A DNA stretch of 64,000 bases from Schmidtea nova (GCA_044892505.1 CM097883.1:446214001-446278000); one strand, 5' to 3'; shown: positions 1 through 23,179, numbered from the stretch's first letter. Translations and numbers: made by a program. Notes: a model not told the origin generated them from the letters alone.

Positions 1-523
1 TGAATAATTAAATTTGAAAGTTAGTTGAGTAATCTTTATCTTTCATTTTTATCGTTTCATTTTACCGAAATTTGTTTGTTCAAACCGAATAAAGCGACTC
101 TTAAATTCAGAATTGTGCGATCGCATAAATTCTGTGTAATTTATTCAAAGAAATTTTCTGGACATTCTAATGGAATATTTGCCAAAGGGAAACTATTTTA
201 ATACAAACTTTATGAATGAGATTGGAAAACAAATTGTTCAGGATTCCATACGTAGCACAATTCTATAAATGCGGATTTAGATGTTTGCTTACTCGTATTT
301 CATTTTCTATTGGAAATGCCAATATTTTCTTGACAATCAATATTCGTAGACAAGTTTCAAAAATTTAATAATTAATGGAATTTTGTAATTTTAAATTAAA
401 TATCTTTTAATTTTCGGAAATAATTTTTTGCAGTAATTCTTTTGAATTTCTGGGTAAAATGATTGATCGAATATTTTTTATATTGTTGGATTGTTGGGTT
501 GTTGGTGAAATGTAAAATTTACC

Positions 524-1185
524 TGTAGCGATGTTGAAGGACTACAATAATAATGTGAAAAATATATTTATATAAATACAGTTTCTCCTTCATTCTTCAT
601 TTTAAAAACTTGCTTCTCCCTTTATTCTAATTATTAAAACAAAATTGAAATCTCAATTTTGTTAATATTTCGAATTAAAATTGCAATAAAATCGGAAGCA
701 CTACAATAGCCCCTGTCGAAGTACGCGGAGCGCATGGGGTACTATTGGTGCTGTAAATTCTGCTGGTGACGTATGTGGTTTGAGGATCGGTCGAGCCTGA
801 GTGACTAGCGGAAGATGTCGATATAATTGTCGGAGATGTTTGTGTGGAATGTGAAATGACTGTATTGACTTTAACAGGAGTTGTTCTGCTGCTGTACTGC
901 TAACTCAGAAGATGTCTCCAGTACGAATCGACGATGTGGTTAGTTTTTTTGGAATATTGTTGCTGTTGTATTTGCAGCCTTATCAGCCAGGCACATTTCT
1001 GACACCAATTGTAGCGATGTTGAAAAACTACAATAATAATGTGAAAAATATATTTATATAAATAAAGTTTCTCCTTCATTCTTAATTTTAAAACTTGCTT
1101 CTCCCTTTATTCTAATTATTAAAACAAAATTGAAATCTCAATTTTGTTAATATTTCGAATTAAAATTGCAATAAAATCGGAAACA
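524..1185 (-). mobile_element. TRIM-like non-autonomous mini LTR element
   Basis: Two ~180-bp direct repeats (524-705 with TGTAG...CTACA ends; 1010-1185 with a damaged end). PBS TGGTGTCAGA at 998-1007, PPT-like AGGGGCTAT at 706-714, ~300-bp internal region. No TSD found. Confidence 0.7.
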
Positions 1186-3938
1186 ATATATTACCAATCA
1201 AATCTGTGACTCCAAAGAGTGTTTCATTTGATCCACAAAATTACAATTGTCTTACAATATAAACCTTTATTGATTATCACAGTTAGTTACACGAATTATA
1301 ACAAATCGATCGATTCAACACTCAAGTAGGCAATTATATGGAGCTTATTGTAACAGTTCGTGAGGAATAGCTCCACGCGTATAACAATCAAAAACTCTAA
1401 CAATCACTAGCCACTGATTAACTCAACAATTGCTTTCGATTGCCCTTGTTCTTTGACTTGACTTTATCAACTATTCTCTGACTCTTATCAATCCAAATTT
1501 CTTTGTTTCGTTCAATTAAGTTATCTACGTCTCGATTCTCCACAATATCACGTAATTATACAATTTCAATTCAATTTCAAACAACACTTTTCTTCAATTT
1601 TAGTACCACTTTTCTTCTCCAACTTTGCTTTTGATTTAGTTAAGATGACTTTCATTTTTTATAGTTTGCCATCTTCCGGAACTCATGGCACATCGCCTTT
1701 CCCACTACTGTATCTAATATTTTTCATTTTCTTTTTTAACTCCCATGTTGCCCCTGACAGTTTGGCTCTCGGGGTAATTGGTTTTTCTCCATTTCTGCTT
1801 ATGACATTTCCCATACACTTTCATAGATTCCACATTAATGTTGACAGTTAGACACTCAGGTTAATTTGTTTTTCTCCTTTAATACTTCTGGCATTTCCCA
1901 TACTTTTTTAAAGCTTTTATGTTATCTTGGACAACTGTCAATATACTGGTTTTGTTTTCGTGTTTTGTTTTCGTGATTTATTTTCGTGTTTTGGTTTTGT
2001 TTTCCAATTTCTGAATTCCATTCAGTTTTCTTGCACTTATCAGTTATAAGTGACTTTTCTCCGCTTTGTTGTTGAGTTTCTTTTCTTTTTTTATTCCTTC
2101 CTCATTTGCTACTTTTTTATTTTTCTTTTTTCTTCTCCAACTCCTGGTTGCAATCTCAATATCTCAATTACGATATCGGTTTTCCTCCAAGATATTCAAA
2201 TTGTCTATTAAATCATTTGTTATTTAGGTATCCTCAACAATATTAAAATAAATTCTAAAAGATAGATGAAATTTACTTATACGTATTTAAATATTCTTAT
2301 ACAATTTTTTATATAATGAAAATATTAAAAAAATTGCAATATTTTATCTTATGATTTACATCTTATTTTTTTCACCTTTGATCTCGATTTTTTTATTTCA
2401 GAAAATTTCAAAAAGTTTTTTATATAAAGACTATCAAAATTGCTTCTTTTAAGATTTTGTTTATATCCTTATTCTTTCAAACTATAGATCAATCTATTTA
2501 CAATTAACACAAATTTTCATCACTGTCTTCTTTGGAAAAAAAATATTTTAAAAAGACAGTGCAGGAATTTTGTGTGAATGGAAATAAAATTAAAACTAAC
2601 AGTTACAAAATTAAAGTACGTTTTGTTATATTACTCCATTACCTACTTTAATGAATACATATAATATCCCGAATATAACAACCTGGAAAAGGCGACATGT
2701 CGGTAGTGCTCATCTGCACCACACAAGAACAAATGCTTTAAGTGTTCAAGGTAAATAATTTAAAAAATAAGATATTTTAATGTATAATACCAATCCAGTT
2801 AAATAATAAGTACTCAGTCACCAAATTTCAGTAATTCCATTTCACTAGTTGTAAAAAAAAGATTGGCAAAAAAATCCTTCTATCTGCAGCAAGAACCCGA
2901 AAGAGAGAATTTAGTGAAGAGTAGTTTCGGCAACTGAACTCACCTGCTCACTAGATTCTCGCCACCGTGTACAGTGCCGACATAGTTACCTGGGGAATAA
3001 CTATGGGTACATGCGTGTGATGGATTGATATTTATGTTGCCGTGCGGGTTGCATTGACCCATAGAAATCGTTATTAATTTTTACAACAACACCCATACCA
3101 CCCAACACTAGTAGTAAAAAAAGATTGGCAAAAAATCCTTTCGACCTTGTAAAATATATAACATTATTAAAACAATTTGAAATCAGTGATAGCTAGTATT
3201 ATAACTTTTATATTTAAAATCTTGAAAATATTCAAAGAATAAAAATATCTTTAAATTTATTTTAAATCTTTATACTAATAATAAATTGTCAGATATTCAT
3301 TTACTTTGTAATAAATAAATTCAGATAGATTTACAATAATATATTCAGCACAAAATAATTATGATTAACAGCGATTTCTGGAAACTTAATTTAATTTAAG
3401 ATGGCTTTCGCTTTTTATAGTTTGCCATCGTCCGGCACTCATGGCACTTCGCCTTTCCCACTACTAAAAAATTATATTAAATTATAAAAAAATCAAACAA
3501 ATTATTTAACAAAAAGAAAAATTCAACTTTTTCGTTGCAAACTAATAACAATTTCTTCATTTATAAAAATCTGAAGAGAATTGTAAAATGTATTTGAAAA
3601 ATGTGAAACTTTAGCACCGAAATGTCTAGTTAAACTGGGAATAGTGTAAACATTTTCTGTTATTTTATTTTACATTGACGTTAGCTAAACTTTAATTATA
3701 TAGATAATTACATAATTTGATAATCATTATTAAAGAGACTTTTGGAAATGTTTTTTTCGGTGGTTTAAGGTAAAGGCATTTTTTATATATGCATCAGAAA
3801 AACATGCCATTTCTAAATTGAATCTGCTCACGTTACGCTCACAAGACATTTGGTATGGTAATCTTGACATAGTCGAACACACAACATTGTGATTTCATGT
3901 AGAAGTTTGAATTGATTCGGATGTATTTAATATGTTTA

Positions 3939-4669
3939 CAGTAAAACCTTGGATTGCGAGTATTTTGCAAGACGAGAGAATTTTTAAAATAAATTTTAAC
4001 TTGATAAGCCAGCTAAGTCTTGTAATACAAGTAACGTGTATACGCATGTCTACCAACCGTCACGTTCGGTTTCAGTCGGTCGGTGTCGATGTGCTTTACA
4101 TATTTACTCAACATACATATGAAGTATTGTTTATTTTCTTTCGAAACGTGGGTAATGAGTACATTTTGATAACAGTACTGTAACCATGGCTCCCAAAAAG
4201 AAAACTGTTGAAAAAGAAACAAGGTAAGAAAATGATTACGGGGGAAGTTAAGAAGGAAATCATCGAGAAGCACGCACGAGGTATGCGAGTGATCGACATC
4301 CGAAGATTGTATTAAAAGTCTACATCGACTATTTGCACAATATTAAAGAAAAAAATTAAGCAGACTAGATGTAGCAAATGTTCCTTCCCGTGTGGATACT
4401 GTGAAGGAAAACTGTATCCACGAGAAGGGAGAAATTTTGAACGCCAACCTCATAAACTGTATTATTTAATGTATGTGTATTACTTTTATGTACCTATAAG
4501 TATTCTTTTTATTTCGTATTAAACATTTTATTTGAATAAATCTTTTGTTGTGGAAGGATTCATTGGTGTTCCCATTATTTGTTATGAGTTATTCGTTTGG
4601 ATAAACGAGTGCTCCGGATTGCAAGTACGTTTCCGGAATGAATTAAGCTCGGTAACCGAGGTACAATTG
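3939..4669 (+). mobile_element. Tigger/pogo-like DNA transposon deletion derivative
   Basis: TA-CAGTAAAACCTTGG left end and CCGAGGTACAATTG-TA right end. A disrupted CENP-B-type HTH start (MAPKK...KKEIIEKHARGMRVIDIRRLY*KSTSTICTILKK) begins at 4186. Confidence 0.7.
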
Positions 4670-4895
4670 TACTTAGTTCTTCCGTTTTAACTGCATGCTA
4701 CAAATGTGTAGGTGTAAATAACTCGAGTATTCTGTACATTTTTCTGATTATAGTATATTATTTTTAGAAATGCTGTATAAATGCAGCCTGTCTTTAAAAA
4801 TAGAACAAAAATAACTGTTTTCACTTTTGATGTTTTATTCGCCTATTTCGTTTATTTTCATTCTTTCAGAATGAAAATGGTCAAAAATCCAACAA

Positions 4896-5306
4896 TTAAT
4901 ATTTTAGTGGACCTGTTTCAATATTAGCTGTTGATACTTTACCAAGTACGGTAAAACCAGCGAAATGAAAATTATAGTCATCTGGACGAGAATCTTGGCT
5001 ATTAATGTTTATAACGTAGCCATCAGTTGGTTCAATATTCCAACCGTCAGGACTCATAATTTTGGTAACATAGAAACCGAAATCATATATAGGAATAGAA
5101 TGCGCTCCATTTGGAGGGACATCAGTCACATAATTTAGAGTTCCGTCCGAAAACATTAATTGTGCTGATAATTTATGATAAGCAAATCCAATGATATCTG
5201 TTTTAACGAAACCACCACATCCAACAATATTACTGTGACACATTTGCAAAATATGAAGTGTTAAAATTTGTAGGACAATTAAAATTTTAACAATAGAATA
5301 ACGCAT
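4896..5306 (-). pseudogene. NOMO: NOMO (nodal modulator) N-terminal fragment inside the 3' LTR; terminates in flanking DNA (GPLKY*)
   Basis: Signal peptide followed by IVGCGGFVK...GTLNYVTDVPPNG..SIPIYD.G...KI..P.GW.IEP...YNFHFAGFTVLGKV.....GP, collinear with the NOMO N-terminus as recalled (VVGCGGFVK...GTLKYQTDCAPNNG...IPLYDKG...PPLGWSFEP...INFVFTGFSVNGKV...GP). Confidence 0.85.
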
Positions 5307-5858
5307 TTTAAATTATCAAAAACTAGTAGTCCACTTTTTAAAAAATATTTATTTTAAACAATATTCACAAGTTTCTTACAATTTTTAAACTTTAGCAGCC
5401 AAATATAAATTCCACGAGAAATATTAAAACAAACCTCAAACAATACCAAACCCTCAGTCAAAATAAAAAAATCAATGTTATTCAATGCAAAATAAATGCA
5501 AATGTAAAAAATTAAAATATATCATTTTTACCAATCATTTTGCAAGTCCAACCACAATGACCGATGTTTTATCACCTGAAAAATATGAAATTTTGAAAGA
5601 AATTAATTCAATTTCTAAATGTAATGATATCAACAATTTCCAAATAATGCAAATTGTTCGAAATTTAAACTCAACATATTCTCACGTTAGAATGAAATGT
5701 TTAAAAGTAATGGGCCAATTTATGGATCCCTTGAGTCATTTTCCATGTGGTTCATCTAATACTTTTGATATTGTTCAGTGGTTTACGCAGGATCAATTTC
5801 ATGGTTTGTGAAATATCATTTGAGAGAATTTTGGGTATCGGCTTTCTAGACCACTACA
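4903..5858 (-). repeat. 3' LTR (956 bp)
   Basis: Same length and, by eye, same sequence as 11775-12730; both contained ORFs translate identically. Confidence 0.95.
5485..5811 (+). pseudogene. Antisense ORF in the 3' LTR, possible tepsin-like ENTH/VHS N-terminal fragment
   Basis: TDVLSPEKYEILKEINSIS...QIVRNLNSTYSHVRMKCLKVM...GSS resembles the tepsin ENTH pattern (DDVPCPGYLFEEIAKIS...LSRLHSSSGHGKLKVLKIL...GSS). By-eye alignment only. Confidence 0.4.
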
Positions 5859-5870
5859 TCAGCCCCCATC
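5859..5870 (-). promoter_or_regulatory. Polypurine tract
   Basis: GATGGGGGCTGA immediately precedes TGTAG of the 3' LTR on the minus strand. Confidence 0.8.
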
Positions 5871-6071
5871 GGAAGATGCGGAGCACATTTTGAAATACTA
5901 TAATGTAGATACGTAATATAGTAGTTTAGTATATAATAATATGGTATTTTGTAGTGTCCGGAAAGTATTTGGAAAGAGTCGTGAAAGAAATGGAATAACC
6001 TGAGAAAGAATTGCGAAAGAAATTTAGGAAACCGAAAAAAAACTAATAGAACTTGGTGGAAAGTGGTGCAA

Positions 6072-9000
6072 TTAATTTGAATAGATTCTTATTAGTCTAG
6101 TTGGTGAATCCGGTTTTTGATTAATAGAACGGACACGAACCCATTTGTTGTAAGTGACGGACTTTGGTTTATTTTGTGTTTGCTTTGTTTTCCTCAAAAT
6201 GGGTGGTAAACGAAGTACGTCATTCGGTTCTTGGATAAACGGTATGTATTCAGATTTTTCCGTCATTTTGTTTTCTGCGTCTGATGTTTGAACAATCGGG
6301 TATGAAGGTGAGTTGTTGGAAAGATCGTCCTCAGTGGAATTGATAGGGTCATTATCGTTTATGTGAGAGTTCGGGATTATATCGGTTTGGATCGAGAAAT
6401 TGTCAGGTGGAGGTTCATCATCGAGCAAAACTAAAGCTGGTTTAAGACGGCAGAGGTTAAATGTTTGTGTAGAGTCGTTAACGATCACTTTCGCGTTGTT
6501 TTCTTTAATATCGACGAGCTTGTAAGGTCCGGAATATCTTGGCTTTAAACTTGCATCAGTTATATTTCTAATATAGACGTGTGATGCATTTTCGAATGTT
6601 TTTGGAATGTAAGGTTTATAGGTTGTCGCGGAAGAGAATTCAGGATTAGTGTCGATTGATAAAAAATGGTCTCTAGCAATCGCGAGATCTTCCAAAGTAG
6701 GAGAGTTATCAAAGTCGACAAGTTGACCTGGTAACGATGTGTTTGTACCGAAAAGTAATTGAGCGGGTGATGATCCTGTAGTCCTAGAAGGTGTATTTCG
6801 CCAACCTAATAATACGAAAGGTAAAACCTTTGTCCAACCTTGTTGTTCAGAAAGAATGCCAAGAGAAGCTTTTAAAGTACGATGGAAACGTTCGACTAAC
6901 CCGTTTGTTTGTGGATGATATGTGGTCGTACGAAGATGTTGTATCCCAAGTTTAGCGGTCAAAGCTTGAAATAAGTTAGATTCAAACTGTGTTCCGCGAT
7001 CACTGATGATCGACTTGGGAACTCCATATCGTGAAATCCAATTTTGAATTAGCGAAGTTGCGATAGTGTTAGAAGAAATGGTGCGTAAAGGAATGACTTC
7101 GAACCAACGAGTCTTGCGGTCGATCATGGTTAATAAGTAAGAGAAACCGCAGTCACTTGGGACTGGGCCGACGATGTCAATGTGTAAGTTTTCGAAACGG
7201 TTGCCAGTGGGGTAATGAATTATTGGAGGTTTAGTGTGCTTAGTTATCTTAAAACGTTGGCATCCTATGCATTGTGCAACCCAGAGTTTAACATCATGTC
7301 TCATGTTTGGCCAAACTACACACGTGTGTAATAGATTAAAAGTGGCTGAGGAACCTGGGTGGTGCGTGTTGTGGACAGAGAGAAAAGCCAGTTTTCTCAT
7401 GGAGTCATTCAAGATTGGGCGAAGAGTGCCAGGAAGAGATGAGTCGTAGTGAATTTTGTCTTTGATTATGTGTTTGTCGCCAAATTTCGAAATATCAATG
7501 GCATCTGGAGGATTATTTTGGAGTTCGTCGATAGAAAATAAAGGACAGTGGATAATTGCGTTTACATTTCGTGAAAGGCAATCAGCTATAATGTTATCAC
7601 TGCCGGCGATGTGGTATATTTGGCAAGAAAATTCGCTAATATAGCTAATCTGGCGTTGTTGTCTCGGAGAAGGGTCTTTCATTGAGAACAAGTAAACAAG
7701 TGGCTTGTGGTCTGTATGGATGCTAAAAATACGGCCCTCGAGTAAATGCTTAAAATGTTTAACCGATTGGTAAATAGCGAGAAGTTCGCGGTCGAAAGCT
7801 GAATATTTTTGTTGTGGTGAGGTAAGTTTCTTTGAGTAAAATTCTAGTGGCTCTGGGATGTAACCGTTTATCTGGTGTAAAACGGCACCGATTGCTATGT
7901 TTGATGCGTCTGTGGTTAAACGTAATGGTAAATCTCCTCGTGGATAATGCAGAGTCTGTATGTTTGAAAGGGCTGTTTTGGCATGCTCAAAAGCGAGCAA
8001 CGAAGTATCGTTCCAAGGAATTATAGATTTCTTTGGTTTAGAACAGTAACCAGAAAGAGGTGAAAGAATTTCTGAAATTTTAGGAATAAAACGGTGGCAA
8101 TAGTTTACTGTTCCCAGAAAACTCCGAAGTTGAGTAACAGTTTGTGGGAGAGGAAACTTAGATATAGTATCTAGTCTGTCGGATGGTGGACTGACGCCTT
8201 GACCCGAGATGATGTGACCTAAAAAACGGACTTCTTCTTTAAAAAATAAGCACTTATCTAAATTAATTTGTAGGTTATTGGAAGAAAGTGCGCAAAGAAC
8301 TGCATCTAAATGTTTTTTGTGTGTTTCCGCATCCTTAGAACCAATAAGGATATCGTCAATATAAGGAATTGCGAATGGTAAATCCATTAAAATATGGTCG
8401 ATGTGTCTTTGAAAGGTTTGAGCGGAATTTCTAAGGCCAAACGGCATGAAAACGTACTCAAAGAGTCCGATAGGTGTTAAAACTGCGGTTTTTTCCACGT
8501 CAGATTCTTTAACTGGGATTTGGTGATAGGCCTTAACTAAGTCTATAGTTGAAAATATTTTGGCCTCGGTAAGTCTGTACAAAATGTCGTTTACTAAAGG
8601 CATAGAATATGAGTCGTGAACCGTAATCATATTTAAACGACGATAATCTCCACAAGGTCTGAAAGTTCCGTCTTTCTTTGGTACGAGATGAAGTGGTGAA
8701 GACCATGGAGATTTAGATCTTTTTATAATGCCTTCGTTCAACAAAGTAGCGAATTCGGAGCGAACAAAATCTAGTTTTTCGTTCGAAAGAGGGCGTACTT
8801 TACAACGTACCGGAAGAGAGTTTGTGGTGTTGATAGTATGGCAGTAAGATGTTACAGAGACTTGCTTTCGTAAAGGCATTGTTTGTGAAAATGTGTATTT
8901 ATTTAAAATGTCTGTAGCAATCTTTGGATGAATGGGTTGAATGGCAGTGGATACAGAAACGTCAGATGAGTTGGAAATGTTGAGTTTTTGTGTGTCCATG

Positions 9001-9482
9001 ACTAAAGACGAATTTGTGTGCGAATGTGTTCTCAAAAGGCGTGAACGACAATCGACCAACAAATTGTGTGAACTCAAAAAGTCTGAGCCAAGAATGGGAT
9101 GGATAACGTCAGCGACACAGAACTTCCATATAAAAGATTGATTTAAAGAAGGAAGAACGAAATTTGCTGAAAAAGAACCGTGTGTATTTACCATGGTTCC
9201 GTTGGCGGCTTTCAAGGTATAAACGGAATCATCGCAAAGAGATTCATATTGTAAAGGAAGAATGGAGAGGCTGGATCCTGTGTCAACAAGAAAATCGAGA
9301 GTACTGCAAAAGTTCGGAGAAACGCTGAAAGAAGGGGATTCAGCTCTCACTAGAAATAAATCGAGTGCAGGAGGTAATTTGCCATCAACTTCAGCCGCAA
9401 CGAGTGATGGCATTACAAGTTTTTTTGAATGTTGTTTGGAGAAGATGGTGGGGAATTGTAGGATTTGCAACCTACAATGCAT
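6072..9482 (-). CDS. pol: Pol polyprotein (protease, RT, RNase H, integrase), probably entered by -1 frameshift near 9419-9425
   Basis: FLVDTGSS (protease); YIDD and MPFGLRNS (RT); TTDAS, DRELL, TDHKPL (RNase H); H..HH...CIGC, LHIDIVGP, SDRGTQF, NGLVERFH and GPY (integrase). Order is Ty3/gypsy; no stops. Confidence 0.97.
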   Translation of the reverse strand: MHCRLQILQFPTIFSKQHSKKLVMPSLVAAEVDGKLPPALDLFLVRAESPSFSVSPNFCSTLDFLVDTGSSLSILPLQYESLCDDSVYTLKAANGTMVNTHGSFSANFVLPSLNQSFIWKFCVADVIHPILGSDFLSSHNLLVDCRSRLLRTHSHTNSSLVMDTQKLNISNSSDVSVSTAIQPIHPKIATDILNKYTFSQTMPLRKQVSVTSYCHTINTTNSLPVRCKVRPLSNEKLDFVRSEFATLLNEGIIKRSKSPWSSPLHLVPKKDGTFRPCGDYRRLNMITVHDSYSMPLVNDILYRLTEAKIFSTIDLVKAYHQIPVKESDVEKTAVLTPIGLFEYVFMPFGLRNSAQTFQRHIDHILMDLPFAIPYIDDILIGSKDAETHKKHLDAVLCALSSNNLQINLDKCLFFKEEVRFLGHIISGQGVSPPSDRLDTISKFPLPQTVTQLRSFLGTVNYCHRFIPKISEILSPLSGYCSKPKKSIIPWNDTSLLAFEHAKTALSNIQTLHYPRGDLPLRLTTDASNIAIGAVLHQINGYIPEPLEFYSKKLTSPQQKYSAFDRELLAIYQSVKHFKHLLEGRIFSIHTDHKPLVYLFSMKDPSPRQQRQISYISEFSCQIYHIAGSDNIIADCLSRNVNAIIHCPLFSIDELQNNPPDAIDISKFGDKHIIKDKIHYDSSLPGTLRPILNDSMRKLAFLSVHNTHHPGSSATFNLLHTCVVWPNMRHDVKLWVAQCIGCQRFKITKHTKPPIIHYPTGNRFENLHIDIVGPVPSDCGFSYLLTMIDRKTRWFEVIPLRTISSNTIATSLIQNWISRYGVPKSIISDRGTQFESNLFQALTAKLGIQHLRTTTYHPQTNGLVERFHRTLKASLGILSEQQGWTKVLPFVLLGWRNTPSRTTGSSPAQLLFGTNTSLPGQLVDFDNSPTLEDLAIARDHFLSIDTNPEFSSATTYKPYIPKTFENASHVYIRNITDASLKPRYSGPYKLVDIKENNAKVIVNDSTQTFNLCRLKPALVLLDDEPPPDNFSIQTDIIPNSHINDNDPINSTEDDLSNNSPSYPIVQTSDAENKMTEKSEYIPFIQEPNDVLRLPPILRKTKQTQNKPKSVTYNKWVRVRSINQKPDSPTRLIRIYSN
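9380..9425 (-). promoter_or_regulatory. -1 programmed ribosomal frameshift signal
   Basis: A_AAA_AAC heptamer in the gag frame (9425-9419), a 6-nt spacer, then an 8-bp stem TGCCATCA/TGATGGCA (9412-9405 with 9387-9380). Pol is in the -1 frame (HSKKLV versus QKNL*). Confidence 0.85.
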
Positions 9483-12178
9483 TTGTTTGCTTTATCCCCA
9501 AATCGTGCGTGATAGATGCACTTATCAATGATTTTGAGGGTAGCTGCTTTGTTTCGCCAGCCACATCCTATGTTGCAACAATTTGCTTTCGTCCCGTATT
9601 TGGTATGATAAAAGCAAATGTTTGAATAAGCCGGGGATTTGGAACGTCGTCGGTCAAACGCATTGGAAGGTGGTGGATTTCGAGACGGAGATTTATAACG
9701 TTCCAAATGCGAAATACGATCAGTAAGGTCGCGAATGGCGCAAAGAAGAGCATTTTCTGTTGATGATGGGAGCGGCGGGCTTGCGATAGGAAGGCTATTG
9801 ACAGATGAGCCTGGTGTACCACCTAACGGAACAATTTCATGAATTTTGTCCGCCATTTTTGCTAATTCGTGTATATCTACCGGAGACGATAAAGCAAGTA
9901 TCTGTTGTGTGTGTGTCGGAAGTACACTTAAAAAGAACTGGCGTAGCATGTTTTGGTCGGGTGCTGTCCCATTTTGCATTTGTTCGAGGTCTGTAAAAGC
10001 CTTCTGCAAAAATTCTGTCGGCTTACAACTTCCTAAAGATTGGGCCTTGAAATATTTTGAGAATATTTCCTGTTTGGGGACTTTAAATAAATCCAGCAGT
10101 CCTGTGCTGAGTTCCTCAAAAGGAGTTAGAAAGGTTTTTTGCGTTGTGCGGCGAATAACGGCAGAAAGGCGGCCTAAATGTTCCTGTGGAATGAGAGATA
10201 ATATTCTATAGAATTTATCTCTTGAAGAAGTAACGCCGCAACTTTCTAAAAGGGCTTCGAGTGTGAGTAACCAAGTTGATGGTGATTGGTTCTCATCTAA
10301 AAAGAACGGACAATTAATATTTTGTCTAGAGTTACTGTCGGAAGAAGCAGCGCCTCGAACATTTCTTTGCTTTTTAGGCAAAGGTTTGGGCTTTTTATCG
10401 TCGTATTCGTTGTCATCATCTATACTTGATGGTGCGCCGCCATACAATGGTACATGACAGAACAACAAGGAATCCGAACATATGTCAGAACTTAAAAGTG
10501 AGTCCTGATTCCTTAATATTGCGCCATTATAAGATATGTATGTTGGTCCCTCGTACGACAAGCGCTTGCAAATTAATGTAGATAGTTTTGATATAGTCGT
10601 CTCCTGGGCTAGTTTGAAATTGAACGTGAAGGAGGAAACCCTTACGAATATTGACAAAGACCTATAGGATATGCGACGTAGCTTAAAATTCGGAAGATTG
10701 GGCGGCTCCGTTAATTTTAATAATAATGATTTTAATAATAATGATATAAATAATAATAATATATAATAATAGAAATTTAATATAATGATAAAATATGCTA
10801 ACGTAACTCCGCAGCGATAATGGGGGCTGATCTTCTGTTCCGAAAAGGGAAGAAAATCTGTTAATATTGGAGTTCCTGTGACTTTTGAATTTGATGGAGC
10901 TTTTAATAGCGAATCATTGATATCGTTGTTGGTGTTTAAGTTCATATTCGATGGAGCTGGTGAAAAATTTACGATAGATTTGATGTTATTGCAATTTTTC
11001 ATGTTGATTTGTGTTGCTTCCGATGTTTGACCAATTGAATTGTATCCCTGTGGCTTAGCACCTAGCGGTATGCAAAGAAACTGCTTTTGAAAGTCATTAT
11101 TCAATTGTTGAGCGACTTTGGGATCCGTTTGAATAAGAGAAAAATTGGGATTTACTGGCATTGAATTTACTGGTTTTGGATTCTGCTGAGAAATCGATCG
11201 ATTTATCGCTTCTAATATTCGAACGTCGACGTTAATCATTGAAAGAACTGTAGAATTTTGATTCTGTGGAGCGACTGGAGATGAACTTATTGTTATTGCT
11301 GACAGACTACTATTCGTTGAATTGTTGACGATTAAAGACTGATTAGGGGCTGTAGAGTTGCTAGAATCTGATATATGATTGTTAGCTTGCTTGGATTTAT
11401 CACTTTGTAAGATTAAATTCTGTTGTAATAAATGTGAAGCCTGTCGAATGTTAGTAGCTGAGTCTTGTGAACTGGTTGGAATCCTTATCAATTGCGCACA
11501 GTCTAATGGAATTTGAGAGTTTTGATTTACTTGAAATGGGGTTGGAATTGACGGTTGATTTTGTCGATTGCTTAAATGCATCGGAGGTGGTGGTGGTTGC
11601 ATTGCAGCTGCAATTCGCTTAACGACTTCAATTTGACTAAGCGTACTTGCATTATTAGAATTAGATGAGTTTAATTGAAATGAATTATTCATTGTTGCTG
11701 GATGTTGTGAGACTTGGGGACGAAATGTTTGATTTCCATCTTGAATTGGAGATTGGTTTTCCTCTGACACCATTTTTAGTGGACCTGTTTCAATATTAGC
11801 TGTTGATACTTTACCAAGTACGGTAAAACCAGCGAAATGAAAATTATAGTCATCTGGACGAGAATCTTGGCTATTAATGTTTATAACGTAGCCATCAGTT
11901 GGTTCAATATTCCAACCGTCAGGACTCATAATTTTGGTAACATAGAAACCGAAATCATATATAGGAATAGAATGCGCTCCATTTGGAGGGACATCAGTCA
12001 CATAATTTAGAGTTCCGTCCGAAAACATTAATTGTGCTGATAATTTATGATAAGCAAATCCAATGATATCTGTTTTAACGAAACCACCACATCCAACAAT
12101 ATTACTGTGACACATTTGCAAAATATGAAGTGTTAAAATTTGTAGGACAATTAAAATTTTAACAATAGAATAACGCAT
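9413..12178 (-). CDS. Chimeric ORF1: signal peptide-NOMO N-domain / low-complexity stalk / TM helix / ubiquitin-like domain / Gag with two CHCC motifs
   Basis: 921-aa uninterrupted ORF. Residues 1-135 NOMO-like, 136-456 N/S/Q-rich, ~458-482 hydrophobic, 508-581 Ubl ending LYGG, then Gag (PFF...PSTWL..LEA...KF) with two C-X2-H-X9-C-X3-C motifs. Confidence 0.9.
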   Translation of the reverse strand: MRYSIVKILIVLQILTLHILQMCHSNIVGCGGFVKTDIIGFAYHKLSAQLMFSDGTLNYVTDVPPNGAHSIPIYDFGFYVTKIMSPDGWNIEPTDGYVININSQDSRPDDYNFHFAGFTVLGKVSTANIETGPLKMVSEENQSPIQDGNQTFRPQVSQHPATMNNSFQLNSSNSNNASTLSQIEVVKRIAAAMQPPPPPMHLSNRQNQPSIPTPFQVNQNSQIPLDCAQLIRIPTSSQDSATNIRQASHLLQQNLILQSDKSKQANNHISDSSNSTAPNQSLIVNNSTNSSLSAITISSSPVAPQNQNSTVLSMINVDVRILEAINRSISQQNPKPVNSMPVNPNFSLIQTDPKVAQQLNNDFQKQFLCIPLGAKPQGYNSIGQTSEATQINMKNCNNIKSIVNFSPAPSNMNLNTNNDINDSLLKAPSNSKVTGTPILTDFLPFSEQKISPHYRCGVTLAYFIIILNFYYYILLLFISLLLKSLLLKLTEPPNLPNFKLRRISYRSLSIFVRVSSFTFNFKLAQETTISKLSTLICKRLSYEGPTYISYNGAILRNQDSLLSSDICSDSLLFCHVPLYGGAPSSIDDDNEYDDKKPKPLPKKQRNVRGAASSDSNSRQNINCPFFLDENQSPSTWLLTLEALLESCGVTSSRDKFYRILSLIPQEHLGRLSAVIRRTTQKTFLTPFEELSTGLLDLFKVPKQEIFSKYFKAQSLGSCKPTEFLQKAFTDLEQMQNGTAPDQNMLRQFFLSVLPTHTQQILALSSPVDIHELAKMADKIHEIVPLGGTPGSSVNSLPIASPPLPSSTENALLCAIRDLTDRISHLERYKSPSRNPPPSNAFDRRRSKSPAYSNICFYHTKYGTKANCCNIGCGWRNKAATLKIIDKCIYHARFGDKANKCIVGCKSYNSPPSSPNNIQKNL
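11763..11772 (-). promoter_or_regulatory. Primer binding site, tRNA-Leu-like
   Basis: TGGTGTCAGA 2 nt downstream of the LTR; matches the complement of the tRNA-Leu 3' end (...UCUGACACCA). Overlaps an in-frame ATG (11773-11771, MVSEE). Confidence 0.8.
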
Positions 12179-12730
12179 TTTAAATTATCAAAAACTAGTA
12201 GTCCACTTTTTAAAAAATATTTATTTTAAACAATATTCACAAGTTTCTTACAATTTTTAAACTTTAGCAGCCAAATATAAATTCCACGAGAAATATTAAA
12301 ACAAACCTCAAACAATACCAAACCCTCAGTCAAAATAAAAAAATCAATGTTATTCAATGCAAAATAAATGCAAATGTAAAAAATTAAAATATATCATTTT
12401 TACCAATCATTTTGCAAGTCCAACCACAATGACCGATGTTTTATCACCTGAAAAATATGAAATTTTGAAAGAAATTAATTCAATTTCTAAATGTAATGAT
12501 ATCAACAATTTCCAAATAATGCAAATTGTTCGAAATTTAAACTCAACATATTCTCACGTTAGAATGAAATGTTTAAAAGTAATGGGCCAATTTATGGATC
12601 CCTTGAGTCATTTTCCATGTGGTTCATCTAATACTTTTGATATTGTTCAGTGGTTTACGCAGGATCAATTTCATGGTTTGTGAAATATCATTTGAGAGAA
12701 TTTTGGGTATCGGCTTTCTAGACCACTACA
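11775..12730 (-). repeat. 5' LTR (956 bp)
   Basis: On the minus strand it begins TGTAGTGGTC and ends GTCCACTAAA, then AA and the PBS. Confidence 0.95.
12357..12683 (+). pseudogene. Antisense ORF in the 5' LTR, possible tepsin-like ENTH/VHS fragment, head-to-head with NOMO
   Basis: Identical translation to 5485-5811; alternative ATG at 12429. Confidence 0.4.
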
Positions 12731-14599
12731 AATATATTTGTATATTTCAGAAAAATGAAATTGAAAAAATTAATTTAAAAAAAAAATGAAATAAAATATC
12801 ATTATTCTACAAACATTTAAATCAAAAATAAAAATCTTGATATAAATATAAAATTTTCGCCTCATTAAATTTTCTGAAAAAGAAAAAACTGCAAGAAAAT
12901 AAATATTTTAAAATGGACGATATTTTTATGGCAATATAAATCAAATTGTAAATCATAAATATCATCAAATTTGACCGACTTAAACAACATAACTATTTAT
13001 CAATAAATAATTTTACAAAAAAAGAAATATCCACTTTTTCAATCAAAAAATTTAATATAAAAATTTTAATTCTTGTAATTTCAATTATAATTTCCTCGTT
13101 TCTGGCTTGATTTGAGAGAATATAAATATTTCAAGTTAAACTATAACTGGGAGATCATTTTCAATTAATTGCCAATTTAATAACCTTTTATTAATTTACT
13201 CTATTTATACTGAACTTCTAGCAACCACGTCAAAATAACCATAAATTTGTTATAAAATTCTAGCAGTTGTTTCAGACAAATGAGCTGTAATGCTAGTCTA
13301 AAGTAATTAATATTTAGTGGCATATTTTTTAGTGACCGGCCTGATTATTTAAAAAAACTATAAATATTATTATTGATCTCGTGATATTATGGTGTACGTT
13401 AATAATAGCAATCACAAAACAGTATTTATTATTACTAGTGATATTCCGTCAAAAATGATGAACGTTTTCAAATTTTATATAAACCAAAAATATAATTCAA
13501 AAGTTCTTTATAATCTTGGGCCAGCCAAGTAGGGTTCGAATCCATAAATCAAATTAATTAAACAATAAATTAATTAAATGAATAAATCACAAATTACTAA
13601 ATCGACAAATTACCAACATTATTAGGAAAATCTAAAATGAAAATAAGATTAAAACAATAACTGATTAACAAAGAGAAAAGTATTTACCAGAATGACAACT
13701 GTGACAAAGCCTCAGGGAACGCAGCTGAAATAACTAAATCAATAAAATTTAATATTAAAATATAATCCACCCATAATTCTAAGAAAAAAACAACAGAAAC
13801 ACTTATCTAAAAACAAATAAATGGGATTAAAATAAATAAACCTAACAACCCGTTATTTATTAAACCAAATTACTGCACCACGAGAGAATCTAGAAGGAGA
13901 ATTAAAAAACAATAAAAAACAATAAATTACGTAAGTAATCCGAACCTAGAAAAATGAAACTAAAATTAATTTAAGAGACGGATTAAAAATAAATACCTGC
14001 CAATTATGGCAGCAGCAGCCGAATTTTTATTGGTTGAGAGCCGACACAAAATAGTATATATGCGGCAGTTAAATTCAGTTTTGTTAATGTCATTTTACCT
14101 TGAGACAATTTGGTATTTTGAGTTTACATTGGATAATTGTAATCTTGGAAATAATAAAGGTATTATTTGATATTATGTGTTGTTAATTATTTTTTTTGGT
14201 TAAACCCTCATGTTTTATTTTGACTAAAATCGATAAGGGCACGTGCCGACGGGCGATAACTGGTCTCCCGACCCAAAACTCTTCGCAGTGTTAGGTGGTG
14301 CGGCGTACGAGCGCTAAATACTGGGGACTGGTTGCACATAGGGGGCAAATGATCACGAACATTTAATTTCATATGCACATTAGTATAAAATGGAGGACTA
14401 CAACGATTGATTTATTAATTCACATGCATAGTACGACAAAAAGATTAGTCCAAGACATTCAGACAGTTATTTTCAGAAAATTTGCAATACACCTACATGC
14501 ATAGAAAAGTTGACGATGACGAATAGAAAAAACCCGAGTTGTTAGACGGACACTAACCACCCGAGAATAGTAGAATTACAAATGAATGAGACCAACGAT

Positions 14600-15384
14600 A
14601 GGGTAAAGGATTTCGAATTCTGAGTAGATACATGCTCCGAACCACCCACATGTGAAAGCGGGAGAGGAATAAGACCAGCTTTAGCCGACATAATTTTTCA
14701 TGAGTTAGAAAATGGGGATCTGTAATTAGATGTCAGGGTGAACTTTATCATGGATAATTTCTCAATCACGAGTAACTAGAATTTTTGACCATCTATTATC
14801 AGGGAAAGGTTGGATGCATGATCAGGAAAATGATTGTTTGGATGTTTGATGAGGAAATGATGAAGTAATGTCGAGGAATTGCTGTGCTTATAATTTTATA
14901 CTTCAGAGGTTTTCGATCGATGATTGAGATGGAGTTGACGGTTTACAGGAGGAAATGATTTATCCCAGAAACCACCGCATAGCTCGAGAGAATATGAATT
15001 GTAATTATTAATTCCAAAATTGAACCGGTAACAGCAGGGGAGATTAACGATTTTTGGTCAACTCAAGATCCGATTTTCATGGGAGAAACTATTGAATGGC
15101 AGTGTAGACTAATGATTTGGGGAAATTAGGAAACTAAGTAACAGATGGCAGACAGCTGAAAATAATTCATAGACAGGGGAATGGTTTTTGGTTTGATTAA
15201 AAATAAAGATTGCGTGAATTCTCAAATTTAGGGTATAAGCGTGCGGAATGATGATTGAGGGGAGTATGATGCTATCGTTCCGGAGTATGGATGAGAAAAA
15301 ATGAAGTAAATCTAACTCGCGTGGTAACCCTGACATAAAACTATTATTTTTCCAGTCAATTTTGTTTGTTTCGTTATAGACCAC
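14600..15384 (-). pseudogene. Possible decayed GIY-YIG/Penelope-like endonuclease region (duplicated at ~24260-25041)
   Basis: Broken frames give RQLHL..., SSTLLHHFLIKHP...LLVIEKLSMIK, reminiscent of GIY-YIG C-terminal motifs. Heavily degraded. Confidence 0.25.
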
Positions 15385-15599
15385 ATGAAGATTAAATCAA
15401 GTATGGAAAATAAAAGTTCCCCGAAAACGAGAGACGTCTATTATCGAAATGGGAAAATTAATAAAATTAATAAAAATTAATACATTAGAAGTCGACTACA
15501 TTTTAATGTATGTGTTTACCATAGCAATAAGTTTCTCTGGGACTATATATTTGTGTGTGTGTGTGTGTTTACCCTGGCATCATCTTTCCGGAGACTATA

Positions 15600-16645: not shown

Positions 16646-17585
16646 TATATTAATGTGTGTGTTTACCTTAGCAACCGTTGCTACGTGGGAAAAGTGGGGC
16701 TAAGTTATCAACTCATTTAAACTTTTTTACTGATCACTTAAATCCATGCCATTAAAAATCTAGATTATTTTGTCTTCATTATAAAATCTAACCTGGTAGA
16801 CTTATTATACTGAGTACCAAATTTGAGTATTTGGATAGGATATGTTCTAGATCCGACTAGGAACCCAGAATAAATTATAATTAAGTAATTTAAGACGCTA
16901 AAGTTCATTTTTAAAAATGAAATAAACTTCCTTGGTCCCGCATGAGAAGAAATTAAGTTAGACCCCTGGTAAAACGACAAAAACTAATTTAATTTATAAA
17001 ATAGAATTCAATGGACTGCTTGTGTAGGTAGGTTAGACATTTATTGAATTCTACAAGTGTTATTTATAGCTATGTGCATTCATATTATTTACCAAGGGGA
17101 ATACCTCCGAATAATTCCAAAGAACGACACACTCGGTCCAGATTAATGCATTATGCAATATCCGGTTAAGTTCGGTTAAAAGTAGAAATAGTAAGAAGCA
17201 TTTATATAAGGACTTCATCGTTGAAGGGTAACGTAAAGAAAATATTTTTGCAAGGGACAACTGGTAAATAAATACTGTATAACGCTGATTTAGTTGGTAA
17301 GAGAGAAATAAAGAGAATCGGATGGGTGTCATTCATTAGCTTCAACAATTTAATTTTTATCGCTACTTTGGAATAATAAAAACTACCGGAATATTTTATT
17401 CGTTTGTTCACTTTGAACGAAGCAATGTGGGATCCGAACGATTGAAAATTGTCCAAAAAACAGAAAATAAAATGAAAAGTGACCTAAATAAATTAAGAAT
17501 TAATTGAATAATTAAATTTGAAAGTTAGTTGAGTAATCTTTATCTTTCATTTTTATCGTTTCATTTTACCGAAATTTGTTTGTTC
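16646..17585. repeat. Dispersed repeat with an inverted copy at ~27440-27895 plus ~29780-30300
   Basis: ORF 17202-17456(-) equals 27571-27825(+); 16650-17130 is the reverse complement of ~29780-30290. Confidence 0.85.
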
Positions 17586-18027
17586 AAACCGAATAAAGCG
17601 ACTCTTAAATTCAGAATTGTGCGATCGCATAAATTCTGTGTAATTTATTCAAAGAAATTTTCTGGACATTCTAATGGAATATTTGCCAAAGGGAAACTAT
17701 TTTAATACAAACTTTATGAATGAGATTGGAAAACAAATTGTTCAGGATTCCATACGTAGCACAATTCTATAAATGCGGATTTAGATGTTTGCTTACTCGT
17801 ATTTCATTTTCTATTGGAAATGCCAATATTTTCTTGACAATCAATATTCGTAGACAAGTTTCAAAAATTTAATAATTAATGGAATTTTGTAATTTTAAAT
17901 TAAATATCTTTTAATTTTCGGAAATAATTTTTTGCAGTAATTCTTTTGAATTTCTGGGTAAAATGATTGATCGAATATTTTTTATATTGTTGGATTGTTG
18001 GGTTGTTGGTGAAATGTAAAATTTACC

Positions 18028-18689
18028 TGTAGCGATGTTGAAGGACTACAATAATAATGTGAAAAATATATTTATATAAATACAGTTTCTCCTTCATTCT
18101 TCATTTTAAAAACTTGCTTCTCCCTTTATTCTAATTATTAAAACAAAATTGAAATCTCAATTTTGTTAATATTTCGAATTAAAATTGCAATAAAATCGGA
18201 AGCACTACAATAGCCCCTGTCGAAGTACGCGGAGCGCATGGGGTACTATTGGTGCTGTAAATTCTGCTGGTGACGTATGTGGTTTGAGGATCGGTCGAGC
18301 CTGAGTGACTAGCGGAAGATGTCGATATAATTGTCGGAGATGTTTGTGTGGAATGTGAAATGACTGTATTGACTTTAACAGGAGTTGTTCTGCTGCTGTA
18401 CTGCTAACTCAGAAGATGTCTCCAGTACGAATCGACGATGTGGTTAGTTTTTTTGGAATATTGTTGCTGTTGTATTTGCAGCCTTATCAGCCAGGCACAT
18501 TTCTGACACCAATTGTAGCGATGTTGAAAAACTACAATAATAATGTGAAAAATATATTTATATAAATAAAGTTTCTCCTTCATTCTTAATTTTAAAACTT
18601 GCTTCTCCCTTTATTCTAATTATTAAAACAAAATTGAAATCTCAATTTTGTTAATATTTCGAATTAAAATTGCAATAAAATCGGAAACA
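18028..18689 (-). mobile_element. TRIM-like mini LTR element, duplicate copy
   Basis: Same sequence as 524-1185, inside the segmental duplication. Confidence 0.7.
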
Positions 18690-21442
18690 ATATATTACCA
18701 ATCAAATCTGTGACTCCAAAGAGTGTTTCATTTGATCCACAAAATTACAATTGTCTTACAATATAAACCTTTATTGATTATCACAGTTAGTTACACGAAT
18801 TATAACAAATCGATCGATTCAACACTCAAGTAGGCAATTATATGGAGCTTATTGTAACAGTTCGTGAGGAATAGCTCCACGCGTATAACAATCAAAAACT
18901 CTAACAATCACTAGCCACTGATTAACTCAACAATTGCTTTCGATTGCCCTTGTTCTTTGACTTGACTTTATCAACTATTCTCTGACTCTTATCAATCCAA
19001 ATTTCTTTGTTTCGTTCAATTAAGTTATCTACGTCTCGATTCTCCACAATATCACGTAATTATACAATTTCAATTCAATTTCAAACAACACTTTTCTTCA
19101 ATTTTAGTACCACTTTTCTTCTCCAACTTTGCTTTTGATTTAGTTAAGATGACTTTCATTTTTTATAGTTTGCCATCTTCCGGAACTCATGGCACATCGC
19201 CTTTCCCACTACTGTATCTAATATTTTTCATTTTCTTTTTTAACTCCCATGTTGCCCCTGACAGTTTGGCTCTCGGGGTAATTGGTTTTTCTCCATTTCT
19301 GCTTATGACATTTCCCATACACTTTCATAGATTCCACATTAATGTTGACAGTTAGACACTCAGGTTAATTTGTTTTTCTCCTTTAATACTTCTGGCATTT
19401 CCCATACTTTTTTAAAGCTTTTATGTTATCTTGGACAACTGTCAATATACTGGTTTTGTTTTCGTGTTTTGTTTTCGTGATTTATTTTCGTGTTTTGGTT
19501 TTGTTTTCCAATTTCTGAATTCCATTCAGTTTTCTTGCACTTATCAGTTATAAGTGACTTTTCTCCGCTTTGTTGTTGAGTTTCTTTTCTTTTTTTATTC
19601 CTTCCTCATTTGCTACTTTTTTATTTTTCTTTTTTCTTCTCCAACTCCTGGTTGCAATCTCAATATCTCAATTACGATATCGGTTTTCCTCCAAGATATT
19701 CAAATTGTCTATTAAATCATTTGTTATTTAGGTATCCTCAACAATATTAAAATAAATTCTAAAAGATAGATGAAATTTACTTATACGTATTTAAATATTC
19801 TTATACAATTTTTTATATAATGAAAATATTAAAAAAATTGCAATATTTTATCTTATGATTTACATCTTATTTTTTTCACCTTTGATCTCGATTTTTTTAT
19901 TTCAGAAAATTTCAAAAAGTTTTTTATATAAAGACTATCAAAATTGCTTCTTTTAAGATTTTGTTTATATCCTTATTCTTTCAAACTATAGATCAATCTA
20001 TTTACAATTAACACAAATTTTCATCACTGTCTTCTTTGGAAAAAAAATATTTTAAAAAGACAGTGCAGGAATTTTGTGTGAATGGAAATAAAATTAAAAC
20101 TAACAGTTACAAAATTAAAGTACGTTTTGTTATATTACTCCATTACCTACTTTAATGAATACATATAATATCCCGAATATAACAACCTGGAAAAGGCGAC
20201 ATGTCGGTAGTGCTCATCTGCACCACACAAGAACAAATGCTTTAAGTGTTCAAGGTAAATAATTTAAAAAATAAGATATTTTAATGTATAATACCAATCC
20301 AGTTAAATAATAAGTACTCAGTCACCAAATTTCAGTAATTCCATTTCACTAGTTGTAAAAAAAAGATTGGCAAAAAAATCCTTCTATCTGCAGCAAGAAC
20401 CCGAAAGAGAGAATTTAGTGAAGAGTAGTTTCGGCAACTGAACTCACCTGCTCACTAGATTCTCGCCACCGTGTACAGTGCCGACATAGTTACCTGGGGA
20501 ATAACTATGGGTACATGCGTGTGATGGATTGATATTTATGTTGCCGTGCGGGTTGCATTGACCCATAGAAATCGTTATTAATTTTTACAACAACACCCAT
20601 ACCACCCAACACTAGTAGTAAAAAAAGATTGGCAAAAAATCCTTTCGACCTTGTAAAATATATAACATTATTAAAACAATTTGAAATCAGTGATAGCTAG
20701 TATTATAACTTTTATATTTAAAATCTTGAAAATATTCAAAGAATAAAAATATCTTTAAATTTATTTTAAATCTTTATACTAATAATAAATTGTCAGATAT
20801 TCATTTACTTTGTAATAAATAAATTCAGATAGATTTACAATAATATATTCAGCACAAAATAATTATGATTAACAGCGATTTCTGGAAACTTAATTTAATT
20901 TAAGATGGCTTTCGCTTTTTATAGTTTGCCATCGTCCGGCACTCATGGCACTTCGCCTTTCCCACTACTAAAAAATTATATTAAATTATAAAAAAATCAA
21001 ACAAATTATTTAACAAAAAGAAAAATTCAACTTTTTCGTTGCAAACTAATAACAATTTCTTCATTTATAAAAATCTGAAGAGAATTGTAAAATGTATTTG
21101 AAAAATGTGAAACTTTAGCACCGAAATGTCTAGTTAAACTGGGAATAGTGTAAACATTTTCTGTTATTTTATTTTACATTGACGTTAGCTAAACTTTAAT
21201 TATATAGATAATTACATAATTTGATAATCATTATTAAAGAGACTTTTGGAAATGTTTTTTTCGGTGGTTTAAGGTAAAGGCATTTTTTATATATGCATCA
21301 GAAAAACATGCCATTTCTAAATTGAATCTGCTCACGTTACGCTCACAAGACATTTGGTATGGTAATCTTGACATAGTCGAACACACAACATTGTGATTTC
21401 ATGTAGAAGTTTGAATTGATTCGGATGTATTTAATATGTTTA

Positions 21443-22166
21443 CAGTAAAACCTTGGATTGCGAGTATTTTGCAAGACGAGAGAATTTTTAAAATAAATTT
21501 TAACTTGATAAGCCAGCTAAGTCTTGTAATACAAGTAACGTGTATACGCATGTCTACCAACCGTCACGTTCGGTTTCAGTCGGTCGGTGTCGATGTGCTT
21601 TACATATTTACTCAACATACATATGAAGTATTGTTTATTTTCTTTCGAAACGTGGGTAATGAGTACATTTTGATAACAGTACTGTAACCATGGCTCCCAA
21701 AAAGAAAACTGTTGAAAAAGAAACAAGGTAAGAAAATGATTACGGGGGAAGTTAAGAAGGAAATCATCGAGAAGCACGCACGAGGTATGCGAGTGATCGA
21801 CATCCGAAGATTGTATTAAAAGTCTACATCGACTATTTGCACAATATTAAAGAAAAAAATTAAGCAGACTAGATGTAGCAAATGTTCCTTCCCGTGTGGA
21901 TACTGTGAAGGAAAACTGTATCCACGAGAAGGGAGAAATTTTGAACGCCAACCTCATAAACTGTATTATTTAATGTATGTGTATTACTTTTATGTACCTA
22001 TAAGTATTCTTTTTATTTCGTATTAAACATTTTATTTGAATAAATCTTTTGTTGTGGAAGGATTCATTGGTGTTCCCATTATTTGTTATTCGTTTGGATA
22101 AACGAGTGCTCCGGATTGCAAGTACGTTTCCGGAATGAATTAAGCTCGGTAACCGAGGTACAATTG
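21443..22166 (+). mobile_element. Tigger/pogo-like relic, duplicate copy
   Basis: Duplicate of 3939-4669. Confidence 0.7.
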
Positions 22167-23179
22167 TACTTAGTTCTTCCGTTTTAACTGCATGCTACAA
22201 ATGTGTAGGTGTAAATAACTCGAGTATTCTGTACATTTTTCTGATTATAGTATATTATTTTTAGAAATGCTGTATAAATGCAGCCTGTCTTTAAAAATAG
22301 AACAAAAATAACTGTTTTCACTTTTGATGTTTTATTCGCCTATTTCGTTTATTTTCATTCTTTCAGAATGAAAATGGTCAAAAATCCAACAATTAATATA
22401 TTTGTATATTTCAGAAAAATGAAATTGAAAAATTAATTTAAAAAAAAAATGAAATAAAATATCATTATTCTACAAACATTTAAATCAAAAATAAAAATCT
22501 TGATATAAATATAAATTTTTCGCCTCATTAAATTTTCTGAAAAAGAAAAAACTGCAAGAAAATAAATATTTTAAAATGGACGATATTTTTATGGCAATAT
22601 AAATCAAATTGTAAATCATAAATATCATCAAATTTGACCGACTAAAACAACATAACTATTTATCAATAAATAATTTTACAAAAAAAGAAATATCCACTTT
22701 TTCAATCAAAAAATTTAATATAAAAATTTTAATTCTTGTAATTTCAATTATAATTTCCTCGTTTCTGGCTTGATTTGAGAGAATATAAATATTTCAAGTT
22801 AAACTATAACTGGGAGATCATTTTCAATTAATTGCCAATTTAATAACCTTTTATTAATTTACTCTATTTATACTGAACTTCTAGCAACCACGTCAAAATA
22901 ACCATAAATTTGTTATAAAATTCTAGCAGTTGTTTCAGACAAATGAGCTGTAATGCTAGTCTAAAGTAATTAATATTTAGTGGCATATTTTTTAGTGACC
23001 GGCCTGATTATTTAAAAAAACTATAAATATTATTATTGATCTCGTGATATTATGGTGTACGTTAATAATAGCAATCACAAAACAGTATTTATTATTACTA
23101 GTGATATTCCGTCAAAAATGATGAACGTTTTCAAATTTTATATAAACCAAAAATATAATTCAAAAGTTCTTTATAATCT

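Follow-up and report, generated by a model that had tools for sequence, protein, structure and literature searches.

A young long terminal repeat retrotransposon of Schmidtea nova carries a NOMO fragment in frame with a ubiquitin-like domain and Gag

Structure of the element and its 921-codon frame

The 64,000-nucleotide stretch CM097883.1:446214001-446278000 of the Schmidtea nova assembly GCA_044892505.1 (hereafter the window, the whole of the DNA analysed, in whose positions all coordinates are given) contains an intact 7.8-kb long terminal repeat (LTR) retrotransposon of the CsRn1 type of Ty3/gypsy, at 4903-12730 on the minus strand. This element houses a 921-codon open reading frame (ORF; 9413-12178, -), in which a fragment of NOMO, a host-like exon, a hydrophobic repeat, a ubiquitin-like domain (Ubl) and Gag follow one another without breaks. 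An earlier note on this DNA, made from the sequence alone, had described the frame as open across the LTR, the primer-binding site (PBS) and the leader, and the ORF call together with Pfam bears out this description.

The boundaries of the element were set by self-BLAST and by the junction sequences. Positions 4902-5858 and 11774-12730 are 100% identical over 957 nt, and the LTR length was set at 956 bp, with the 5′ LTR (11775-12730, -) starting with TGTAGTGG and ending with CCACTAAA, and the 3′ LTR at 4903-5858 (-). The 3′ LTR repeats the NOMO-derived ORF start, from which a 136-aa ORF (4896-5306) extends to a stop just within the flank. The paired LTRs have inverted termini and are accompanied by the further features of a Ty3/gypsy element, including the PBS TGGTGTCAGAGG two bases past the 5′ LTR (11761-11772, -), a polypurine-tract-like motif adjoining the 3′ LTR (5859-5870, -), and a 5-bp target-site duplication, ATATT, at 4898-4902 on the 3′ side of the element and at 12731-12735 on its 5′ side. 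The same PBS is kept across the relatives L003-L008, and the polypurine-tract-like motif is kept in the relatives L003 and L006. A tRNA-Trp PBS counts among the traits of the CsRn1 clade; no tRNA genes were found in the 64-kb window. Because the two LTRs are 100% identical, the insertion is very young.

A contiguous, 99.5-99.8% identical copy of the flanks (1-4905 and 12731-15465) that lacks the element lies at 17505-25122, and self-BLAST and junction comparison place the empty insertion site at 22395-22403. This 7.6-kb duplicate of the insertion site stems either from a segmental duplication in the recent past or from the tandem assembly of two haplotypes. The possibility that the element is an assembly chimera was rejected in view of the 5-bp target-site duplication and the matching empty site.

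Beyond the Ubl, the 921-codon ORF encodes a disordered linker, a helical capsid-like domain (aa 634-782; 9833-10279, -) recognized by AlphaFold and by a weak DUF7041 match, and two zinc knuckles of the CHCC form CX2HX9CX3C (aa 855-904; 9467-9616, -), which are modelled with a predicted local distance difference test score (pLDDT) of about 95. The columns of the two knuckles, at aa 855-872 and 887-904, are nearly invariant across a 29-sequence alignment. An intact pol ORF without breaks (6072-9482, -) encodes 1136 aa when counted from its first ATG and shares 70 nt with gag, which it overlaps in the -1 frame. Its Pfam domains are RVT_1 (aa 267-425), RT_RNaseH (aa 518-618), Integrase_H2C2 (aa 692-746) and rve (aa 766-857), representing reverse transcriptase, RNase H and integrase in the Ty3/gypsy order, with integrase last. 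The CHCC motif CX2HX9CX3C, in place of CCHC, is the Gag signature of the CsRn1 clade (PMC2582038), and the element is assigned to the CsRn1 type by its double occurrence. The PBS overlaps the codon for M136 (11771-11773), the ancestral start of Gag, and the peptide K-MVSE arising from this overlap is also present in the related proteins P0007 and P0032.

Host-derived sequences ahead of Gag

The first 133 codons of the ORF (11780-12178, -) are derived from NOMO, a subunit of the BOS complex, as indicated by Pfam and protein alignment. The domain NOMO1-like_1st (PF22898), the first beta-sandwich of NOMO, matches aa 32-105 (E=1.2e-12), and P0001, a full-length NOMO of 1152 aa, is the only long database match for the whole 921-aa protein, with the alignment beginning at the first Met of both and showing 79% identity over aa 1-133. 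A signal peptide is predicted at aa 1-25 (12104-12178), overlain by a hydrophobic peak at aa 2-24. The homology covers only the first 133 of about 1150 aa and does not reach the later beta-sandwich array and the C-terminal anchor of NOMO, and no further NOMO exons were found in the window; on this alignment, the NOMO part is a fragment and not a NOMO gene. The NOMO orthologue search returned P0001 alone. A candidate intron beginning at GTAAAGT near 11815 was rejected, since P0001 remains coding across the site.

All of the NOMO homology lies within the LTR, where the NOMO ATG occupies LTR position 553 and the homology stops 6-8 nt short of the LTR end. The sole AATAAA of the LTR (12220-12225, -; LTR position 506) lies inside a 14-15-nt motif that motif comparison also recovers in the LTRs of two relatives, L003 and L006. 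The distance from this motif to the PBS is 461 nt in the present element, where NOMO follows, 68 nt in L003, which has no host fragment, and 737 nt in L006, where histone H2A follows. An A-run and a short leader, the latter of 28 nt here and 15 nt in L006, separate the poly(A) signal from the host ATG. Because it lies just downstream of the conserved poly(A) signal of the family, the NOMO piece is placed in the unique 5′ region (U5) of the LTR. Since the U5 of a new LTR can be copied only from the RNA's 5′ end, the genomic RNA behind this copy must have contained the NOMO AUG. No ATG is present in the 216 nt ahead of the NOMO ATG (shuffling P=0.004), and the NOMO AUG should come before all others in the genomic RNA. 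From this LTR anatomy, we infer that the 921-aa fusion is the main translation product of the genomic RNA, in which 12 AUGs are encountered from the NOMO AUG to the ancestral Gag start.

The NOMO fragment and the PBS are followed by a stalk rich in Ser, Asn, Gln and Pro (aa 141-445; 10844-11758, -). The earlier note had taken this part for an AT-rich leader, a description that did not hold: its GC content is 37%, and it is homologous to an exon-like ORF elsewhere, P0006 on contig L002 (355 aa), which was recovered by a profile-free HMMER scan of 1.8 billion proteins and shows 61-66% aa identity. The P0006 ORF ends at a donor-like GGTAAGA, the stalk homology stops at that ORF end, and contig L002 shares neither LTR nor PBS with the element. 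The simplest view is that the stalk, about 300 codons between the PBS and Gag, is another exon captured from a host. Over 321 stalk codons, the reading frame contains no stops, compared with 24 and 21 in the other two frames, and it stayed open in none of 5,000 nucleotide shuffles. Against P0006, the ratio of nonsynonymous to synonymous substitution rates (dN/dS) is 0.09-0.18 with dS saturated, pointing to strong purifying selection on the stalk relative to this homologue. The approximately 15 N-X-S/T sequons reported for the stalk were counted as exactly 15, within aa 141-421, compared with 7.8 ± 2.4 in shuffles. P0006 itself contains 12 sequons along its 355 aa and lacks an evident signal peptide, and judging from this homologue the sequon enrichment is inherited. 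Both passengers, the NOMO fragment and the stalk, are in frame with Gag.

A further ORF of 108 codons (12357-12683, +; copy at 5485-5811, +) runs antisense to NOMO in the unique 3′ region (U3) of the 5′ LTR. Such a length is unusual for DNA of 21-35% GC. Searches of Pfam, NCBIfam and PDB gave no match for this ORF, which could represent a third captured piece.

Between the stalk and the Ubl lies a hydrophobic segment (aa 458-490; 10709-10807, -), with a hydrophobic peak at aa 456-491 and a maximum Kyte-Doolittle value of 2.45 over 19 residues. The earlier note had described a transmembrane helix here; a hydrophobic segment is indeed present, but it is the product of a tandem repeat. TRF reports it as a degenerate (TAA)n or 15-mer repeat (10714-10789), and its coding DNA is a degenerate (TTA)n microsatellite with periods of 3 and 15, which encodes Ile, Leu or Tyr in all forward frames and cannot give rise to a stop. 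The repeat sits precisely where the stalk homology gives way to the Ubl.

The Ubl (aa 505-581; 10436-10666, -) adopts a beta-grasp fold and ends in LYGG. Its identification in the earlier note is confirmed by a Pfam ubiquitin match (E=0.002, 69 of 72 profile positions), by an AlphaFold model with pLDDT of 91-97, and by Foldseek matches to ubiquitin, SUMO, ISG15 and the Ubl of ubiquilin with a probability of 1.00 and TM-scores of 0.72-0.88. In the 29-sequence alignment, GG closes the Ubl in all 26 of the relatives that reach that far, mostly as part of an RLRGG-like motif directly ahead of the linker to Gag, and in one relative, P0025, the domain is near-canonical ubiquitin (E=4e-23). The Ubl-GG probably allows host deubiquitinases to cut after the GG and thereby free Gag. 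The earlier note had suggested that the Ubl recruits the endosomal sorting complex required for transport (ESCRT); a GG-ended Ubl is found family-wide, however, directly ahead of Gag, a position that suggests release of Gag from whatever precedes it, and not recruitment of ESCRT.

Relatives of the Gag part are numerous, with 488 proteins at E<=1e-10 and identities of 25-41%, and the Ubl-GG-Gag layout is present in every one of the 26 that are sufficiently long. The sequence ahead of the Ubl is highly variable among these relatives and includes host fragments, which were read as continuous ORFs on metagenome contigs. In L006, histone H2A begins at its own M1 inside the LTR and provides the only in-frame Met upstream of the Ubl, with gag and the visible part of pol open. 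L001 carries a 5′-nucleotidase fragment in a continuous ORF ahead of Gag, L007 has a DIS3-like piece upstream of the PBS and a CNOT1 piece downstream of it, and L009 contains an SCC3-like piece in a continuous ORF. Because the relatives hold unrelated host fragments in the same position, NOMO looks like one passenger among several. Within L003, positions 1-10324 comprise two 99.2% identical units that share LTRs of about 172 bp and are arranged head-to-tail with a period of 5052 bp, which reflects either an array of elements in tandem or several copies assembled together.

Proposed capture of host 5′ ends and alternative explanations

We favour, with moderate confidence, the explanation that this family recurrently captures the 5′ ends of host mRNAs, and that the present element is a recent, intact copy with two passengers, tolerated by means of Ubl-GG release. 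In the NOMO case, the 5′ end of a host mRNA, comprising a short leader, the start codon, the signal peptide and the first beta-sandwich (133 codons), would have replaced most of U5. Minus-strand strong-stop DNA may have switched to the host mRNA and run to its capped 5′ end, after which the strong-stop DNA would have been transferred onto the polyadenylated 3′ end of the element RNA. The strong-stop template switching proposed here would explain why the junction lies just past the poly(A) signal and why the captures begin at the host start codon. The resulting fusion would be routed to the endoplasmic reticulum (ER) by its signal peptide, and the repeat-encoded hydrophobic stretch would stop transfer, leaving Ubl-Gag and Gag-Pol in the cytosol. 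The precursor would therefore be of type I, with the NOMO domain and the stalk in the lumen and the repeat-encoded helix as anchor, and host deubiquitinating enzymes would cut after the GG of the Ubl to free the Gag core. Such cleavage, freeing Gag, may be the reason that the family tolerates arbitrary N-terminal additions. The type I topology follows from the sequence and is a fair prediction for the primary product, but it is probably incidental; under recurrent capture, it would be a by-product of which host mRNA was captured.

Several observations weigh against this explanation. The host's own NOMO gene and the stalk-donor gene were not seen, and the host-to-element direction of the stalk transfer is one that we infer. 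The A-run junction signature comprises two cases only, in AT-rich DNA, and the PLYGG of this copy deviates from the RLRGG common among its relatives. No sister copies of the element were found by exact look-ups or by scans of metagenome and viral contigs, and this copy could have been mobilized by the proteins of sister elements.

This last point is central to a possible but rather unlikely alternative, in which the capture happened by accident not long ago and sends Gag wrongly to the ER, and the copy was inserted with sister-element proteins, retains an ORF that has not yet decayed, and will not persist. With identical LTRs and a polymorphic insertion, the element is too young for visible decay; an in-frame junction has a chance of one in three, and freshly captured exons are open by origin. 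The 12 AUGs before the ancestral Gag start also mean that normal Gag would hardly be made from such an RNA. However, L006 has no in-frame Met ahead of the Ubl other than its captured H2A start, and yet its gag and visible pol are open, several independent captures persist as continuous ORFs, and the stalk is under strong purifying selection relative to its homologue.

A bolder proposal, which we regard as distinctly unlikely, is that the CsRn1-type lineage uses the Ubl-GG as an adaptor and repeatedly takes up host 5′ ends in U5 as removable Gag modules, and that the captured module is functional in the present element. If this is true, an element without env gains a membrane-anchored Gag precursor with a host-like ectodomain.

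It is quite improbable that the signal peptide, NOMO ectodomain, glycosylated stalk and transmembrane helix were selected as an adaptive device, whether for tethering Gag and Gag-Pol to ER or secretory membranes or for budding with a host-like ectodomain while the Ubl recruits ESCRT. Every module of the type I membrane Gag that the earlier note had proposed is present and in frame, the sequons are enriched over composition, and translation from the NOMO AUG is likely from the LTR anatomy. Moreover, a signal peptide without a later stop-transfer sequence would put Gag in the ER lumen, so that a working copy needs both, and this copy has finished at least one transposition cycle with its present LTR. 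The view that these parts form a purpose-built device is nevertheless unsupported: the helix is a microsatellite at a junction, the sequon enrichment is shared with a stalk homologue that has no evident signal peptide, and the relatives hold unrelated, non-secretory fragments in the same place. In addition, the conserved GG right before Gag predicts release from any tether, and no second copy or relative bearing the NOMO fragment was found among the protein matches or in the metagenome and viral contig scans.

It is highly improbable that the arrangement is an artefact, either an assembly chimera or a host NOMO exon merely adjoining a retrotransposon: the near-identical 7.6-kb duplicate in the window may be a haplotype assembled in tandem, but the NOMO fragment is identical in both LTRs, the LTRs are bounded by TG-type termini, the 5-bp duplication, the PBS and the polypurine tract, the empty site matches exactly, and the window holds no further NOMO exons.

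Neighbouring features and relation to known systems

The window contains several other features. An intact 269-aa ORF at 60746-61555 (+) encodes a Tenuivirus/Phlebovirus nucleocapsid domain (Pfam Tenui_N, E=6e-12, aa 33-143) and may represent an endogenous phlebovirus-like element. Part of another, diverged reverse transcriptase (52744-53593, +; RVT_1, E=2e-23), 30-39% identical to the pol of the element, extends as far as an N run at 53661-53860. Several transposase-associated ORFs are located at 54200-58175 (+) and 61907-63017 (+), among them one with DUF4371 (E=5e-8) and two paralogues of 159-177 aa with no Pfam match. The ORF at 32879-34126 (-) consists of a single exon and encodes 415 aa, with a RING finger (zf-RING_2, E=5e-8) at the N terminus. 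Two pairs of inverted repeats, 17129-17584 with 27443-27898 (about 460 bp, 98%) and 16646-17135 with 29780-30270 (about 490 bp, 93%), flank roughly 10 kb including an N run, a pattern reminiscent of the termini of a large DNA transposon or of an inverted duplication.

Among known elements, those of the CsRn1 clade (CsRn1, PwRn1, AgCR and Boudicca) resemble the present one in the Gag motif CX2HX9CX3C, which occurs twice here, in a pol of protease, reverse transcriptase, RNase H and integrase that overlaps gag in the -1 frame, and in young copies with near-identical LTRs (PMC2582038). In contrast, an N-terminal Ubl and host fragments in U5 are not mentioned in the literature found on the clade. 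The LTR length also differs, being 956 bp in this element and about 172 bp in its relative L003.

Host-derived sequence lies here within the boundaries of the element and is copied on transposition, as it is identical in both LTRs, which is the hallmark of host-gene transduction. Maize Bs1 and other gene-capturing LTR retrotransposons carry internal host fragments in a hybrid ORF with gag, and 189 independent gene captures by LTR elements have been reported in maize (PMC13317346, PMC2774510). Unlike these, the element described here is autonomous and intact, its capture lies in U5, upstream of Gag, and starts from the host start codon, and captures recur through an animal element family.

Acutely transforming retroviruses usually carry their host part after Gag and in place of viral genes, and in SVA 5′ transduction host sequence is gained via abnormal template switching. 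The present case is similar to Gag-onc fusions and SVA in that host mRNA sequence would have been acquired by aberrant template use and kept in later copies, whereas, in contrast to Gag-onc, the host part precedes Gag and nothing is lost.

The glyco-Gag of gammaretroviruses such as murine leukaemia virus (MLV) is translated from a CUG in the leader into a type II signal-anchor protein whose Gag part lies in the lumen. The earlier note had cited MLV glyco-Gag, and the extended Gag of the present element would be similar in being an in-frame N-terminal extension of Gag, ER-directed and made from the same genomic RNA. It differs in its AUG start in U5, its host signal peptide of cleavable type, its predicted type I topology and the predicted cytosolic location of Gag, and on these predictions it is an analogue of glyco-Gag and not a member of that type.

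The polyproteins of cytopathic pestiviruses contain ubiquitin insertions that end in GG and are cut by host ubiquitin C-terminal hydrolases. Like these and other ubiquitin fusions, the present element has a GG-ended module directly upstream of a protein needing release, but here the module is a Ubl that has diverged and become fixed before Gag throughout a retrotransposon family, and its cleavage is a prediction.

In the literature, we found no Ubl-GG fixed ahead of a retrotransposon Gag, no animal element family in which U5 has repeatedly captured the 5′ ends of host mRNAs, and no captured signal peptide. Reports of host-gene capture by LTR elements come mainly from plants and acutely transforming retroviruses, whereas the element described here is an autonomous animal element. 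Its structure and the comparable captures in its relatives point to a repeatable route for exon shuffling that puts host N-termini on capsid proteins. Moreover, the Ubl-GG suggests that host deubiquitinases are borrowed for polyprotein processing, which would be a new retroelement strategy and would explain the tolerance of the family for cargo, and the signal-peptide case provides a concrete, checkable prediction of where the Gag precursor is synthesized.

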